The notes under the pieces are model-generated. The model ran no database searches, was not told the origin of the DNA, and worked only from the letters and a program-made list of their open reading frames with translations. The position numbers were made by a program, and so were the translations under genes. Source: Oikopleura dioica (Eukaryota > Animalia > Chordata). From it: a stretch of 64,000 bases of DNA. Below, piece after piece: positions 20,016 to 25,123 of the stretch; the first letter of the stretch is position 1; every line of letters starts with the position of its first letter. The stretch covers positions 2,666,001 through 2,730,000 of the forward strand of contig OU015566.1 in assembly GCA_907165135.1 (NCBI GenBank). The letters are read 5' to 3'.

Positions 20016-21829
20016 TTACTTTCGTCCGGGTGCAGTAGAACTGTAATCGGCAGCCCAATCAGTCTCAGTTTGTGGTCTCCATGAGGCGTTGCAGTTGTCA
20101 GCGTTTGAACAACACTGGGTGCATCTTTTTAATTGGTTCAGAGAAGTTTTTCTAGTTTTAAATATGCTGTTTGTAAGTTGCTATTTAATGATTTCTGAAT
20201 CGTTCCTGGAAGTCTCCTTCATTCCATTTTTGTAAGCGCCGGAGTGGCCATGGATGATGTGAAGAGAATTGTAGTTCAAGTTGCTCGAGCCATCAAGAAC
20301 GTAGTCTGGATCAACGTAGAGTCCGCTGACAAGTCCACCAGAATCAGGAGAACCGTCAGTGAAATCAGTGAAAGTTTTATCATGAGAGTCGGCGTGGTTT
20401 CCATTGGCATTGTAATACCACTAACAATAAGTAAATGTCTTTGATCTTAAAATAATATCTCACCTCATCAGCTTTAATGTCATATGGTCGTCGGGCAATC
20501 TTTTCAGCGGTGTTAGTTGCATCGACAGGCCAGCATTGTCGTCCAGCCTTGACAAGGAAGTTCTGGTACTTTTGCATGTAGCAGGCCTTGGCTTGTTTGC
20601 AACCTCGCTCGAAGGAGACCAAGAAGCCGAACTGTCGTCGCTCTTCAACAAAGCAGACACCAGATGAGTATGGGCAGAACGTTGTTGGCGCATCTCCGTC
20701 TCCGTCTTGGTCAGCGTCACAGGCGGTGATAGCAGCGGCCTCGTCAGTGTAAAAGTCAGCTGAATATATTTGAAATCAATGTTATCCGAGTCATTGCTTA
20801 CATCCGTTCTTCTGCTTGAGAACAAATTTATCATTGTCCGTGTCCCACATAACTTGGAAGTCGATCTTGCAAACTTTGCATTGCAGTCTTGCTTCATCAT
20901 TGATGTCGCTGAATGCTCGGGCATCACTGGGGTGAAGTCCAAGTTCCCAAGATTTATCATAAGTTGCATCACCGGCTTCATTGTTATGAGTAGCGGAGAT
21001 CCATGATCCCTGATAACGAGCATGGTCGTCTTGGTCGAAGTCGCTCAAGACACCTTTGTCTTGGATGCCACCTAAAAGTATATTATTAAGTCTCAACCTT
21101 AATTATTCTTTATCTCGTTTGATAGAAATGTTTTTGCTCCTTACCCATGTAGTTCTCCATGTTGTTGTGGACGTGTCCAATATCAACGGCTTGGTCGGAA
21201 TGGTTAGTGTGGACCTTTCCATCCCAGTGGCGACCGTAATCAGCTTTCCACATTGCGTATGCATCGGGAGCAGCAGCTCTCTGGCCACTGACGTATCCGT
21301 AGGAAGAGACTTCGCCGAAGTTCTGGTAGGGATCGTAGCTGCCGCTGGATCCAGTGTTGTAGCCGTATCCGGTATTGTCATAGCTTGGGTAGCTCAAAAT
21401 GTTGGAAAGGCCGTAATCGTAGGAACCGTAAGGATTGGAAGATGGAGCAGATGGAATGTATGGCTGGTAGTCCTCGGCTCGTTCGGCGTCATCAGCTACT
21501 GGGGCCTAAACTTGGGTTGTACAGAAATTCTCGAGGATGAAAATTACCATTGTTGTGGTCTGTAGGGAGTTCACTTTTGTTAGATAGCCTTATTGATAAA
21601 AAATCTGTATTCAAATAATTGATCGCAATTATTTACTTCGTTAGATTAGTGCATGAGTACTTGTCTCTCGATGCATTTTAGTAAAGAAATTGAAATAAAA
21701 AAGATAAAGAACTTTTTAAAGAACTCATCGTCTCAACTTTCAGAGAAGAAAGTGAGGTTGTAAAAATTATCTCTTCAGTTGATGTGGTTGCCGTTGTTGT
21801 TTTTGTTGTTGTTGTTGTTGTTGTTGTTC

Positions 21830-21884
<55 letters not shown>

Positions 21885-21886
21885 AG

Positions 21887-21956
<70 letters not shown>

Positions 21957-23966
21957 GGTTGTCGATGTGGTTGTTGTTGTGGTAGTACTTGTCGTTGTTA
22001 TTGATGTCTTTTAGACGTTAAAAAACATTAAAAATGTGAAAACTTGATATATTTTATATATCAGCAGATAAAAAATGTTTTTTTTTGGTTTGTTAAAAAA
22101 TGAAAGTAAAAATGGAAAAATAAATTCTTGTAAAAAAAATTAAAGAACTCAACGTCGTGGTTGGGGGCTCGGTAGTCGTTGTTGTTGTAGTTGTGGTTGT
22201 AGTGGTTGTTGTAGTGGTTGTTGTAGTGGTTGTTGTCGTGGTTGTTGTTGTGGTGGTGGTGGTGGTACTTTCCTCCGTCTTCGACGGTTCACATTAAAAA
22301 ACAAAAAAATATATAGAAAAATAACTGTTAATAAAGTATCACGACGCTGAGATAAATATATAGAATGTTGGAAAATTGAAAAAACTGATAAAGAATTATA
22401 TAATCTTGAAAATCGAATATTTGTGAACTTAACGTTGTGATTTCAGCAGTGGAAGTCTGGAGCTCAGTTGTAGTGATGGGCTCCGTTGTTGGCTGATATT
22501 TGTTCACATAAAGAATAGAAAAATTCAATGACAGCAAAATAAGAAATAATAAAACTCGGAAAATCGTAAAAAAATCAAAATAAATGAAAAACAAATAATT
22601 AAACAATTTGCGAACTAAACTCAGGAGTTGTCGTTGTGGTCGTCGTCGTTGTTGTTGTTGTGGTTGTTGTTGTGGTGGATGTTGTCTTACCTTGGTTCCA
22701 AAAAATTTTTAAATAAAATAAAATATTTGAAATATTCTTTTGAAAAGAAATAAAGATTCAAAGAATTCTAAGAAAAATCAAATTTAAATACAAACAGAAA
22801 AATAAACAAGAAAAAAATTGAATCGAACAAGCAAAAAGCTTCGAAAAAAGCAAAATTAAGGAACTCAACGAAGTGGTTGTTGAAGTAGTTGTGGTTGTTG
22901 TTGTTGTTGTTGTGGTGGTGGTTGTGGTCTTCAGTGGTTCAGAATAAATAATATTAAAAATCATCTTTCAAAAAATAAATCAAGCTTTTGAGAAAAATTT
23001 AAATATTAAATTACAAATCGATAATAAAGAAAAATATGTATTTTTAGTAGAATGTCAATAATAAAGACAAATATTGAAGAGTTTAAATATACCAAAATTG
23101 TTTATAAATTATTCGGAAAATAGAAAAATCAGTGTAAGAATCAGTAAAATAAATAAATAAACAATGACTTTGTTTCGTTAAATAGATATATTACTTGAGT
23201 TTTGATTGTGAGATGATATTTAAAAAAAAATTTTGAACTCTTAACGTTGTGGTTGTAGTTGTTGTTGTCGTAGTCGTTGTTGTGGTTGTAGTGGTTGTCG
23301 TTGTGGTGGTTGTTGTCTTCGAAATGGTTCATTTTGTTCATAATAAAAATATTCCATTAAAAATTAGAATACGAAACAAATATCTTCAGGACAAGAAAAA
23401 TACATAGAGTTTAAGTAAATCAAAATGCATTCTTTGTCCGTTTGCAACATATTATTAAACTATAATGAAACTCAAAAATTGCAGATTTAAAGAAATAATT
23501 GAAGATATCAAAAAAAATTAACATCAAAAAATTATTTCAGGAAAGACAACTGTTAAATAACGCTAATCAATATTTCTACGTAACAAATTAACGAAAATTT
23601 GAACTCATAACTGTTCAGCGGTGGTCTCAACAGCGGCGAAATCGAAGTCACCAAAGTCAAAGTCAGCAGCCTCGCTCTTTGACTCGGTGGCATCAACACC
23701 GGCGGAGTCGTAGTTGTAGTAGTTGTCGAATTGTGAAAGGTCCATTCCTTCGAATGTGTTAAGTCCAGAGCTGCCAGCTGATCCGGAAACGTCATCGCTC
23801 GCACCGGCGGCAAGTTCGACATTGGAACTGTCCTGAAATCAAGAATAATTTCAAAAGTAATGAGTGAATATCTACCTGGAACTCAGCAGAATCGGCAACA
23901 GCAGCTTCAGTTGTTGTTGTCGTGGTTGTAGTAGTGGTCGTTGTAGTGGTAGTGGTCGTGGTAGTG

Positions 23967-24018
<52 letters not shown>

Positions 24019-25123
24019 TAGTAGTAGAAGTGGTAGTAGTAGTAGTAGTAGTTGTAGTAGTAGTAGTAGTAGTTGTTGTTGTCGTTGTTGTCGTGGTCGT
24101 TGTGGTGGTGGTTGTGGTAGTTGTCGTTGTTGTTGTGGTCGTGGTCGTGGTAGTTGTTGTTGTTGTCGTGGTTGTCGTGGTAGTGGTAGTAGTAGTTGTA
24201 GTGGTGATGGCAGTGCATTTAAATCCATTTCCTTCAAATCCATCATTGCACTGGCAAAGGTAGCCGAGATCATCTGGTCCTCGCTTTCGACCGCGCTCAA
24301 ATCCGCCGACAGTGCTTACACATGTTGCGTCGGCATCACACTTGTGGTCACCCACGGCGCAGTGGTCGATTCGCTGGCAGGTAAATCCGTCACCTTCGTA
24401 TTCATTGTTGCAGGAGCAGGTGTATCCGCCATCAGTGTTACTGCAGCTAGCGTTCTCGTCACATCGATCTTCGCCTCGCTTGCATTCATTCACGTCATTG
24501 CAGCGGACTCCATTTCCGTCGTATCCAGCATTGCAGCTGCATTCAAAGCCGCCTGGCGTGTTATTGCACGAGGCATTGGCGTTACAGTTGTTTTCACCGT
24601 TCGAACACTCGTCGATGTCGTTGCAAGAAGCACCGTCGCCAAAGAAGCCCTTGTTGCAGGAGCAGTTGTAGCTGCCTCGGGTATTGCTGCAGCTAGCGTT
24701 AGCATCGCAAGGAGAGTTGGCGCACTCGTTGACGTCGTCACAGAACTTGCCATCGCCGGAGAAGCCAGCGTTGCAAGAGCAGCTGTAGCCGTCTTCGAGA
24801 TCAGTGCAGGAAGCGTTGGGGGAGCAGTCGTCCATGCTCAAAGCGCACTCGTCAACTGGACCCTGAGTTGTTGTTGGAGCAGCAGTGGTTGTTGTTGGCT
24901 CAGGAGTTGTCGTAGCGGCTTGGGTCTTGGGCTGTCTCTTCTTCTTCTTTTTCTTTGAGCCGGAATTATTCGCGGCAGAAAGAGCGATCAGCTGAGCAAG
25001 AACATCTGCGCTTGGAGCAGCGAACATGGACGCGTAATCCATATCATCGCTGCCGCCGAACTGGGCCGTTGCCAGGCCGCAGAGAACGGCAACGCCAAAA
25101 ACGAGCCGTTTTTGCAATTTCAT
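20016..25123 (-). CDS. Large secreted EGF-mucin: signal peptide, 5 EGF-like (mostly Ca-binding) repeats, poly-Thr tracts over many mini-exons, Tyr/Gly-rich region, C-terminal Ly6/three-finger-like Cys domain (candidate house/oikosin-type protein)
   Basis: Exon 23876-25123 (ORF track), then 23611-23832, 23245-23316, 22869-22928, 22620-22685, 22433-22492, 22153-22278, 21729-22007, 21548-21559, 21145-21505, 20802-21071, 20464-20759, 20206-20420, 20016-20124; ends RCTQCCSNADNCN...PGRK*. Joining the Thr mini-exons needs non-canonical introns (see findings). Confidence 0.7.
20125..20205 (-). other. Predicted GA-AG intron with stem TTCAGA/TCTGAA
   Basis: Phase-2 removal joins KETS-R to CTQCCSNADNCN; purine-rich acceptor CCAATTAAAAAG. 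Confidence 0.6.
21790..21975 (-). repeat. (ACA)n-type coding microsatellite, poly-Thr
   Basis: Long (GTT)n run on the + strand inside exon 21729-22007. Confidence 0.9.
23905..24210 (-). repeat. ACN-codon poly-Thr tract (~100 residues)
   Basis: Mixed GTA/GTT/GTC/GTG triplets on +; variation falls at the third position of ACN codons on the minus strand. Confidence 0.9.

Follow-up and report, generated by a model that had tools for sequence, protein, structure and literature searches.

The window analysed in this work is a stretch of 64,000 nucleotides (nt) from chr1 of the Okinawa lineage of Oikopleura dioica (OKI2018_I69; GenBank assembly GCA_907165135.1, contig OU015566.1, positions 2,666,001 to 2,730,000). 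A gene for a secreted EGF-mucin lies on the minus strand of the window and is interrupted by seven consecutive introns, six or all of which break one of the two terminal rules of spliceosomal introns. These introns had been proposed by a first-pass annotation, made from the sequence alone, as TT..AG or AT..AG introns with covarying GTTC/GAAC stems. The gene, the seven introns, the mini-exon that follows them, and a canonical control intron are listed below, where a caret marks the border between exon and intron or between two exons. The evidence that places each intron is given in its line, where ORF stands for open reading frame and cDNA for complementary DNA.

20016..25123, minus: secreted EGF-mucin gene, 1126 amino acids in the register of the first-pass annotation; from the ORF model, Pfam, and cDNA.
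23317..23610, minus: intron 1, CAG^TTATGAGTTC..GAACCATTTCGAAG^ACA, or GT..AA, or AG..GA; skipped exactly in Okinawa cDNA contigs (X1 and X2).
22929..23244, minus: intron 2, ACG^TTAAGAGTTC..GAACCACTGAAG^ACC; an X1 contig supports the donor, and the orthologous junction is in L004, L005, and L007.
22686..22868, minus: intron 3, TCG^TTGAGTTCC..GGAACCAAGGTAAG^ACA, starting TTGAGTTC; from ORF continuity and the orthologous junction in L004 and L005.
22493..22619, minus: intron 4, GAG^TTTAGTTCGC..GTGAACAAATATCAG^CCA, starting TTTAGTTC; from X1 record 1 and the orthologous junction in L004.
22279..22432, minus: intron 5, ACG^TTAAGTTCACA..TGTGAACCGTCGAAG^ACG, starting TTAAGTTC; from X1 record 1 and the orthologous junction in L004.
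22008..22152, minus: intron 6, ACG^TTGAGTTCTTTAA..TTTAACGTCTAAAAG^ACA, starting TTGAGTTC; from ORF continuity and the orthologous junction in L004, with two mismatches.
21560..21737, minus: intron 7, with a firm 3' end at 21560 and four possible positions for the 5' end, of which the first-pass choice (21560-21728) starts ATGAGTTC.
21548..21559, minus: mini-exon of 12 nt, ACCACAACAATG, whose acceptor is common to all shorter cDNA forms.
23833..23875, minus: canonical GT..AG control intron of 43 nt, skipped in the X1 and X2 cDNA contigs that also skip intron 1 and absent from the Bergen lineage.

Every string and coordinate that the first-pass annotation gave for the seven introns was found in the sequence. 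The base before each intron is G (7/7), and the introns in that register start with TT in six cases and with AT in one. They are AT-rich (18-28% G+C) and 127-316 nt long. Each of the seven has GTTC at +5 to +8 or +7 to +10, within RAGTTC, and each ends with GAAC (TAAC in intron 6) followed by 8-10 nt of which the last two are AG. The exon lengths are 222, 72, 60, 66, 60, 126, 279, and 12 nt, every one of them divisible by three, and all introns are in phase 0 between Thr-rich cassette exons. The first-pass annotation described the flanking exons as exact codon multiples that read as Thr, Pro, and Glu with variation at ACN third positions; the codon multiples and the ACN variation hold in both the Okinawa and the Bergen lineages. 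With these intron borders a single ORF of 1126 amino acids opens with the ATG at 25123 and closes with the TAA at 20016-20018. The introns exhibit no interior similarity to each other (mean column identity 42%). No matches were obtained by BLAST of the seven introns against the rest of the 64-kb window, which gives no sign of a repeat family, and no match was obtained by an Rfam search of the introns and the whole window. A pattern scan of the window for further RAGTTC...GAAC-N-AG introns returned only chance-level matches outside the gene. Transposon-derived introns (introners) were considered and rejected, as interior similarity is lacking both among the seven and in the window and no target duplication is visible.

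The RNA of the Okinawa lineage consists of assembled contigs from plankton metatranscriptomes (X1 and X2). The read comparison used 2,006 letters of the locus, with pure (ACA)n and (ACT)n runs left out. Two contigs, X1 record 2 (depth 15) and X2 record 7, skip exactly 23317-23610 (294 nt) as well as the canonical intron at 23833-23875. Two letters fit on either side of the intron 1 junction, hence the three ways of writing it (TT..AG, GT..AA, or AG..GA). X1 record 2 also goes 8 nt past 23245, the end of exon 3, with the G kept, as ACCACAAC, with which both exon 4 and the mini-exon begin. X1 record 1 covers both flanks of exon 5. Its left flank reads ...ACTCCcGAG^CCAACAACGG, where the end of exon 4 is ...ACAACTCCcGAG with one synonymous difference, and its right flank reads ...CACAACG^ACGGAGGAAAG, which is the start of exon 6. 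The register proposed for the messenger RNA (mRNA) holds in the Okinawa lineage for introns 1, 4, and 5 and for the donor of intron 2. The same register is read at all seven orthologous junctions by L004, a full-length Bergen-type cDNA contig with one ORF of 1169 amino acids. At intron 1, GAACAG^ACAAC is present in 10/10 cDNA contigs from at least five lineages.

Two further RNA observations were made. Species-labelled bulk RNA (X24) covers the locus very thinly, with 39 reads on 21965-23970 in the Thr-rich exons, mostly at 95-99% identity and with long tails that do not match; a paralogous mucin or another lineage is their probable source. A joint from 21986 to 22418 in X24 is not interpretable. 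The first 31 nt of an otherwise spliced Bergen-type cDNA (L003:1-31) are the last 31 nt of intron 6, which suggests a partly spliced molecule or slow removal of intron 6.

The arrangement is also found in the genomic DNA of other lineages. The Bergen orthologue (L002; OdB3, FN653026.1) carries all seven introns at corresponding places, and their ends are almost unchanged. Between Okinawa and Bergen the first 16 nt of the introns are identical at 13-15 of 16 positions and the core and the AG are kept, while the interiors are 50-64% identical. The Bergen exons of 93, 90, 90, 48, 165, and 360 nt correspond to those of 72, 60, 66, 60, 126, and 279 nt in Okinawa, and all are multiples of three. Contigs of the Joint Genome Institute (JGI) were scanned with the exon-2 peptide, which yielded 13 loci: three genomic (L008, L009, and L013) and 10 cDNA, these from five or more lineages. 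The environmental genomic contigs L008 and L009 are of Bergen type. L013 is genomic sequence of a third lineage and covers intron 1 (G^TTATGAGTTCAAAC..TTGAACCATCGGGCAG^), intron 2, and the donor of intron 3. The DNA contigs of an independent run (X30) are identical to the window at the intron ends they cover, namely introns 1, 4, and 5 at either end, intron 3 for the most part, and intron 6 at its 3' end, and differ from it only inside introns. The comparison of ends comprised 16 intron copies from three lineages. The one-base-offset arrangement is conserved in at least three cryptic lineages.

Two explanations that would remove the oddity altogether were weighed against these data. An assembly or sequencing error, with one base missing or extra at each donor, has nothing in its favour but the oddity itself. 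The donors are the same in X30 where covered, in the Sanger-era Bergen sequence L002, and in L008, L009, and L013. The conserved ends and the independent DNA contigs thus exclude such an error, and its probability is negligible. Strict GT..AG (or GA..AG) splicing with frames that rotate through Gln/Pro and His/Asn polymers, or a decaying pseudogene, is very improbable. The first-pass annotation had kept strict splicing open and had suggested that it could produce alternative polymers. Each intron does offer a GT and an AG, and the shifted frames stay open, but only inside the mucin exons. When all seven introns are spliced strictly as G*..AG, a stop is reached at amino acid 715, just past the 12-nt mini-exon, and the C-terminal domain, which is conserved over 39 representative clusters, is lost. 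Junctions longer by one nucleotide are found in the cDNA of two lineages, whereas a GT..AG junction was looked for and is in none of the cDNA contigs examined. The ACN third-position variation and the exon lengths in multiples of three, both found in the two lineages, also argue against strict splicing. Frame rotation and pseudogene decay are excluded by the cDNA register together with the single ORF, and rotation as the main form is refuted.

The mRNA keeps one G per junction, so the piece that is lost falls short by exactly one base of the GT..AG (or GA..AG) segment available in the sequence. The exon-final base and the intron-final base are both G in 16/16 copies from the three lineages, and a lineage in which the two differ was sought among these copies and none was found. 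Because these two bases are the same in all copies, mRNA cannot separate TT..AG from GT..AA/CA. The earlier statement that both give the same mRNA through the shared G is exact. One end is non-canonical either way, and either the start-G or the end-G rule is broken in six or seven consecutive introns.

The seven stretches are genuine introns of one EGF-mucin gene and belong to a lineage-specific non-canonical class of O. dioica. They are presumably removed by the U2-type spliceosome. Larvaceans have U2-type machinery only and have lost U12 (PMC13326754), which is taken as support for the spliceosome, and precise removal in this U2-only organism is seen in the cDNA contigs. The physical cuts would lie at G^UU...AG^, to which we give about an even chance. 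The introns would then have U for G at +1 and a donor that fits the U1/U6 consensus from +2 to +6 (N-U-R-A-G-U), next to an invariant G at exon -1 and a normal [A/C]AG acceptor. For G^UU..AG^, the T at +2 and the G at +5 are invariant in introns 1-6. The AG is invariant in 16/16 copies and position -3 flips between A and C (mostly AAG in Okinawa and mostly CAG in Bergen), as at ordinary acceptors. The cut at G^UU is favoured because the GT..AG product is absent: a G at +1 would naturally pair with the overlapping AG. The claim that donors without G at +1 are outside the known set does not hold in general, since human U2-type precedents exist in ETV1 (TT-AG) and ACTR10 (AT-AG) (PMC4176328). The seven introns may have arisen from the duplication of a single exon-intron module whose donor carried a G-to-T change at +1. 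The likely starting state would be a canonical intron in the Thr phase, ACG^GTAAAT..CAAG^ACA, from which the single change gives the present form. A canonical comparator of this kind is present in the same gene in Bergen (L002:7961-8007), where a phase-0 ACG^GTAAAT..CAAG^ACA intron is spliced in five cDNAs.

Several points weigh against cuts at G^UU. The cut sites are inferred, and ^GU..[A/C]A^G gives the same mRNA. Read as ^GU, every copy starts with G, in line with the published O. dioica G*-AG rule. In the G^N register nothing in Bergen intron 7 (GAG^TCACTG) resembles a U1 site, while the other register gives it a plain GT start. GAGTTC is 2-3 nt farther from the cut in introns 1, 2, and 7 than in introns 3-6, which leaves no single fixed register. 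It is quite conceivable, though we hold it short of even, that the same introns are cut as ^GU(U)...[A/C]A^G to give the same mRNA, with U1 on NURAGU in a shifted or bulged register. The 5' cut would be made at the closest GU upstream (GA for intron 7 of Okinawa), and the second step would take place at the A one base before the AG. Such cuts would account for the G at the 5' boundary in 16/16 copies, followed by T in nearly all, and for the spacing of 1, 3, or 4 nt between the cut and the U1-like motif. They would also agree with the published O. dioica G*-AG donor set, give Bergen intron 7 a GT start, and make the first and last pairs uniformly G...A. Shifted U1 registers have been proposed for larvacean introns (PMC13326754). 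However, a non-AG acceptor would be needed every time despite the overlapping AG, and the expected GT..AG product is in no cDNA. The penultimate intron base would vary between A and C among orthologues, and two simultaneous one-base shifts would be required to derive these introns from a canonical phase-0 intron. Adenosine-to-inosine (A-to-I) editing of AA cannot account for the CA ends. The 5' splice sites with shifted or bulged U1 registers that Roca and Krainer reportedly described, of which GUUAAGU and GUUGAGU are said to be the classic sequences, differ from the introns here, as they are cut at GU with a normal AG and would give the GT..AG product that is not seen.

Four other candidates were rejected. 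An AG..NC reading works for introns 1, 4, and 7 only. Cleavage at a bulge-helix-bulge by tRNA endonuclease, or of the IRE1 type, does not suit the geometry, in which the two cuts fall outside the helix and to one side of it. Editing-dependent GT-AA or AT-AG introns do not fit as the TT starts and the CA ends (5/7 in Bergen) are not editable by A-to-I into GT or AG. U12-type introns have a [AG]TATCCTT donor and a TCCTTAAC branch 10-15 nt from the 3' end, where the donors here are NTRAGTTC; the short distance from GAAC/TAAC to the 3' end is the sole U12 resemblance.

The donor of intron 7 was examined in both lineages. The Bergen-type cDNAs L003 and L004 read ATTGAG^ACCACAACAATG, i.e. ...AAAATTGAG^ACCACAACAATG, and the Bergen genomic sequence reads ...ATTGAG TCACTGAGTTC...CCCTACAG ACC. 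From the two, Bergen intron 7 is writable as TC..AG, GT..CA, or AG..AC. Its cut at GAG^TCACTGAGTTC lies 3 nt upstream of the homologue of ACG^ATGAGTTC, the cut chosen by the first-pass annotation. Four donor options are present in Okinawa.

21737, minus: AAA^GTTGAG, canonical GT..AG (..CAG^).
21734, minus: GTT^GAGACG, GA..AG.
21731, minus: GAG^ACGATG, homologue of the Bergen cut; AC..AG, GA..CA, or AG..AC.
21728, minus: ACG^ATGAGT, AT..AG, the first-pass choice.

All four are in frame. The 3' end of the proposed AT..AG intron is firm at 21560, whereas its start at 21728 is made doubtful by the Bergen-type cut 3 nt upstream and by the canonical in-frame option. The Okinawa AT..AG intron is insecure because no Okinawa RNA lies over the junction and four in-frame donors are available. 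Six introns are secure, and the AT..AG form of intron 7 is the least secure part of the finding.

The covariation claimed for the stems of these introns is weak. The RAGTTC(N) near the 5' end and the (N)GAAC 8-10 nt before the AG might form a stem of 4-7 base pairs (bp) and so draw the two ends close to each other. The complementary GTTC and GAAC are 4-7 nt and 8-10 nt away from the cuts, and a 4-7 bp helix is possible in 6/7 introns. The next inner position pairs in five of the seven paralogous introns, as A-T three times, C-G in intron 3, and G-U in intron 4. Introns 4 and 5 reach 7 bp, and intron 7 extends outward (GAGTTC with GAACTC). Judged by duplex energy, cognate ends form better pairs than ends swapped between introns (p about 0.01-0.02), with a permutation p of 0.011 in Okinawa (8 introns) and rank 115 of 5040 in Bergen. 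Other results tell against a stem. The test of flanking-pair counts is not significant (0.23 and 0.13), and in both lineages intron 6 keeps TAAC, which leaves a core of 3 bp. The arms are conserved from one lineage to the other with no compensatory change, and the sole two-sided change (intron 2) makes no pair. A realistic alternative, to which we give somewhat less than an even chance, is that GTTC and GAAC are separate signals for protein or small nuclear RNA that are complementary by chance and form no stem. One would be an extended donor element and the other, 10-13 nt from the 3' end, would resemble a branch site. The conserved blocks, which at 10-12 nt on the 5' side and GAACC on the 3' side outrun the bases able to pair, favour separate signals, as do the TTTAAC of intron 6, which is nearer to the branch consensus, the missing compensation between lineages, and the pair-count test. 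Separate signals are opposed by the base beside the core, which changes in step among the paralogues, by the greater stability of cognate duplexes, and by the poor match of GGAAC to the U2 branch. A stem is possible, and the two-signal explanation fits the data about as well.

Shorter forms of the transcript were seen in contigs from several wild-plankton metatranscriptome samples. In these forms the donor of intron 2, 3, 4, or 5 connects straight to the acceptor of intron 7, and every form is in frame. The short forms and the 3' arm of intron 7 are listed below.

Intron 2 donor to intron 7 acceptor: L006 and L010 (Bergen-type cDNA), ORF of 903 amino acids.
Intron 3 donor to intron 7 acceptor: L007 (Bergen-type cDNA).
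Intron 4 donor to intron 7 acceptor: L005 (Bergen-type cDNA).
Intron 5 donor to intron 7 acceptor: L014 (another lineage).
Exon-4-type TCG^ donor to the mini-exon: L001 and L016.
21569..21576, minus: GTGAACTC, the 3' arm of intron 7, with which every donor-side RAGTTC arm of both lineages forms its most stable duplex.

The duplexes with the 3' arm of intron 7 have a column mean of -9.1 kcal/mol compared with -3.0 to -6.4 kcal/mol for the other arms in both lineages. Each donor arm might pair either with its own acceptor arm or with this stronger arm of the last intron, and the choice would determine the length of the mucin stalk. The short forms fit such docking, or simply a stronger acceptor (CCCTACAG), or shorter wild alleles. 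It is rather doubtful that they are transcripts of wild alleles that have lost exon-intron modules by unequal recombination, as a form of mucin length polymorphism. The contigs do come from wild-plankton metatranscriptomes and the repeat length differs among L002, L003, L004, and L009. However, four short forms share the acceptor and start at successive donors, as predicted by competition for one strong acceptor, and no such deletion is present in L002, L009, or the window. That the O. dioica spliceosome routinely takes U (or A) at +1, with the arms as a docking code that sets the number of cassette exons, is improbable. If it were true, the choice of pairing would set the number of Thr-rich cassette exons kept and hence the length of the mucin stalk. 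The exon clusters of Dscam are spliced through competing docking and selector RNA pairing, with the mutually exclusive choice of one exon. The introns here are similar in that many modules have a similar short arm able to pair with one shared arm. They differ in that a terminal block of exons is dropped and the predicted pairing is only 6-7 bp.

The O. dioica G*-AG introns (GA-AG, GC-AG, and GG-AG) make up 11-12% of introns (PMC8008620, PMC7072748, PMC13326754). The seven introns are similar to that class of the same species in the G at exon -1, the purine-rich AAG acceptors, and the lack of a pyrimidine tract beside the AG, and a GA..AG member (20125-20205) is in the same gene. Both presumably use the same U2-type machinery. 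However, GT and AG are present here yet not paired, and the one-base offset leaves either the +1 or the last base other than G. A first base G is not found together with a final AG, as the cDNA junction is one base longer. In length, the seven introns exceed the species median of 49 nt by a factor of 3-6. Fritillaria borealis, another larvacean, has AG/AC and AG/AT introns (Henriet 2019 cited in PMC11282704; PMC13326754). Its introns break both rules, have terminal complementarity, and are removed by U2-type machinery, and introns 1, 4, and 7 here are formally AG..NC. The differences are that no YAY triplets, no repeated family of miniature inverted-repeat transposable elements within the window, and no target-site duplication are present here, and that introns 2, 3, 5, and 6 have no AG start. 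In place of YAY, the exons end with CAG, ACG, TCG, or GAG and the introns with AAG or CAG.

The nonconventional introns of euglenids (PMC11282704, PMC4770533) also have variable ends and a short stem inside, at +4..+6 with -8..-6, compared with +5..+8 with -13..-10 for the putative stem here. Those introns leave as circles and are probably non-spliceosomal, whereas a U1/U6-like donor and an invariant AG are found here. The human TT-AG, AT-AG, and GT-AA introns (ETV1, ACTR10, and NRK; PMC4176328) are similar in having a single departure at +1 or -1 and being U2-like otherwise, and in being mis-annotated as aligners force GT-AG. The human cases are isolated and often recent or editing-dependent, whereas six or seven adjoining introns are constitutive and conserved across cryptic species here.

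No features of spliceosomal introns are more conserved than the G at +1 and the G at -1, both of which are linked to second-step chemistry, and six or seven adjoining introns here give up one of the two. Cryptic species share the arrangement even though the interiors of their introns can no longer be aligned. The one-base-offset introns lie outside the published O. dioica G*-AG set, and the short forms that reach the intron 7 acceptor are new. A culturable organism with one spliceosome offers here a compact natural test set for the tolerance of the U2-type active site for other terminal pairs and for whatever takes the place of the lost signal. Aligners that force GT-AG would mis-place or miss such junctions, and other genes with such introns are probably mis-annotated likewise.

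The gene is broken at the odd introns in both reference annotations. The OKI2018_I69 annotation of g665 has the C-terminal 417 amino acids only; it starts at the ATG inside the 12-nt mini-exon (21548-21559), which is a false start, and the upstream part is lost. The C-terminal exon (21146-21505) is 100% identical to Oidioi.mRNA.OKI2018_I69.chr1.g665.t1. In the OdB3 (Bergen) annotation the same gene is split into models of 396 and 431 amino acids (L002:7001-12278). The protein has, in order, a signal peptide, 5-6 EGF/EGF-CA domains, a long Thr-rich mucin region, and a Cys-rich C-terminal domain. Exon 1 matches Pfam EGF_3/EGF_CA/cEGF, and no model matched the C-terminal domain in the Pfam search. 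That domain (20206-21505, minus) has the motif ...CEYSSGVCFVEERR..RGCKQAKACYM.KYQNFLV.AGRQCWP... and defines a family of 39 representative protein clusters, nearly all from marine metatranscriptomes and some fused to EGF arrays. The members may be larvacean-specific secreted (house?) proteins.

Near-pure (ACA)n and (ACT)n codon runs lie within the mucin exons (21800-21960 and 23960-24090, minus). The number of repeat units varies among L002, L003, L004, and L009, so the mucin region is length-polymorphic in the wild. One further intron of the gene lies in the C-terminal domain.

20125..20205, minus: GA..AG intron, CAG^GAACGATTCAGA..TCTGAACCAATTAAAAAG^ATG; from the ORF model.

Its orthologue (L002:12078-12178) is confirmed by Bergen-type cDNA with an ambiguity of 3 nt. 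Its ends can pair as TTCAGA/TCTGAA in Okinawa, and Bergen lacks both arms and has CGATT/AATCG instead; this may be chance and is given as an anecdote only. The cryptic species also differ in their canonical introns. Bergen lacks the 43-nt intron of Okinawa, and Okinawa lacks the 47-nt GT..AG intron of Bergen (L002:7961-8007), which sits in the first Thr run. Each lineage's own canonical intron is spliced in the cDNA of that lineage.

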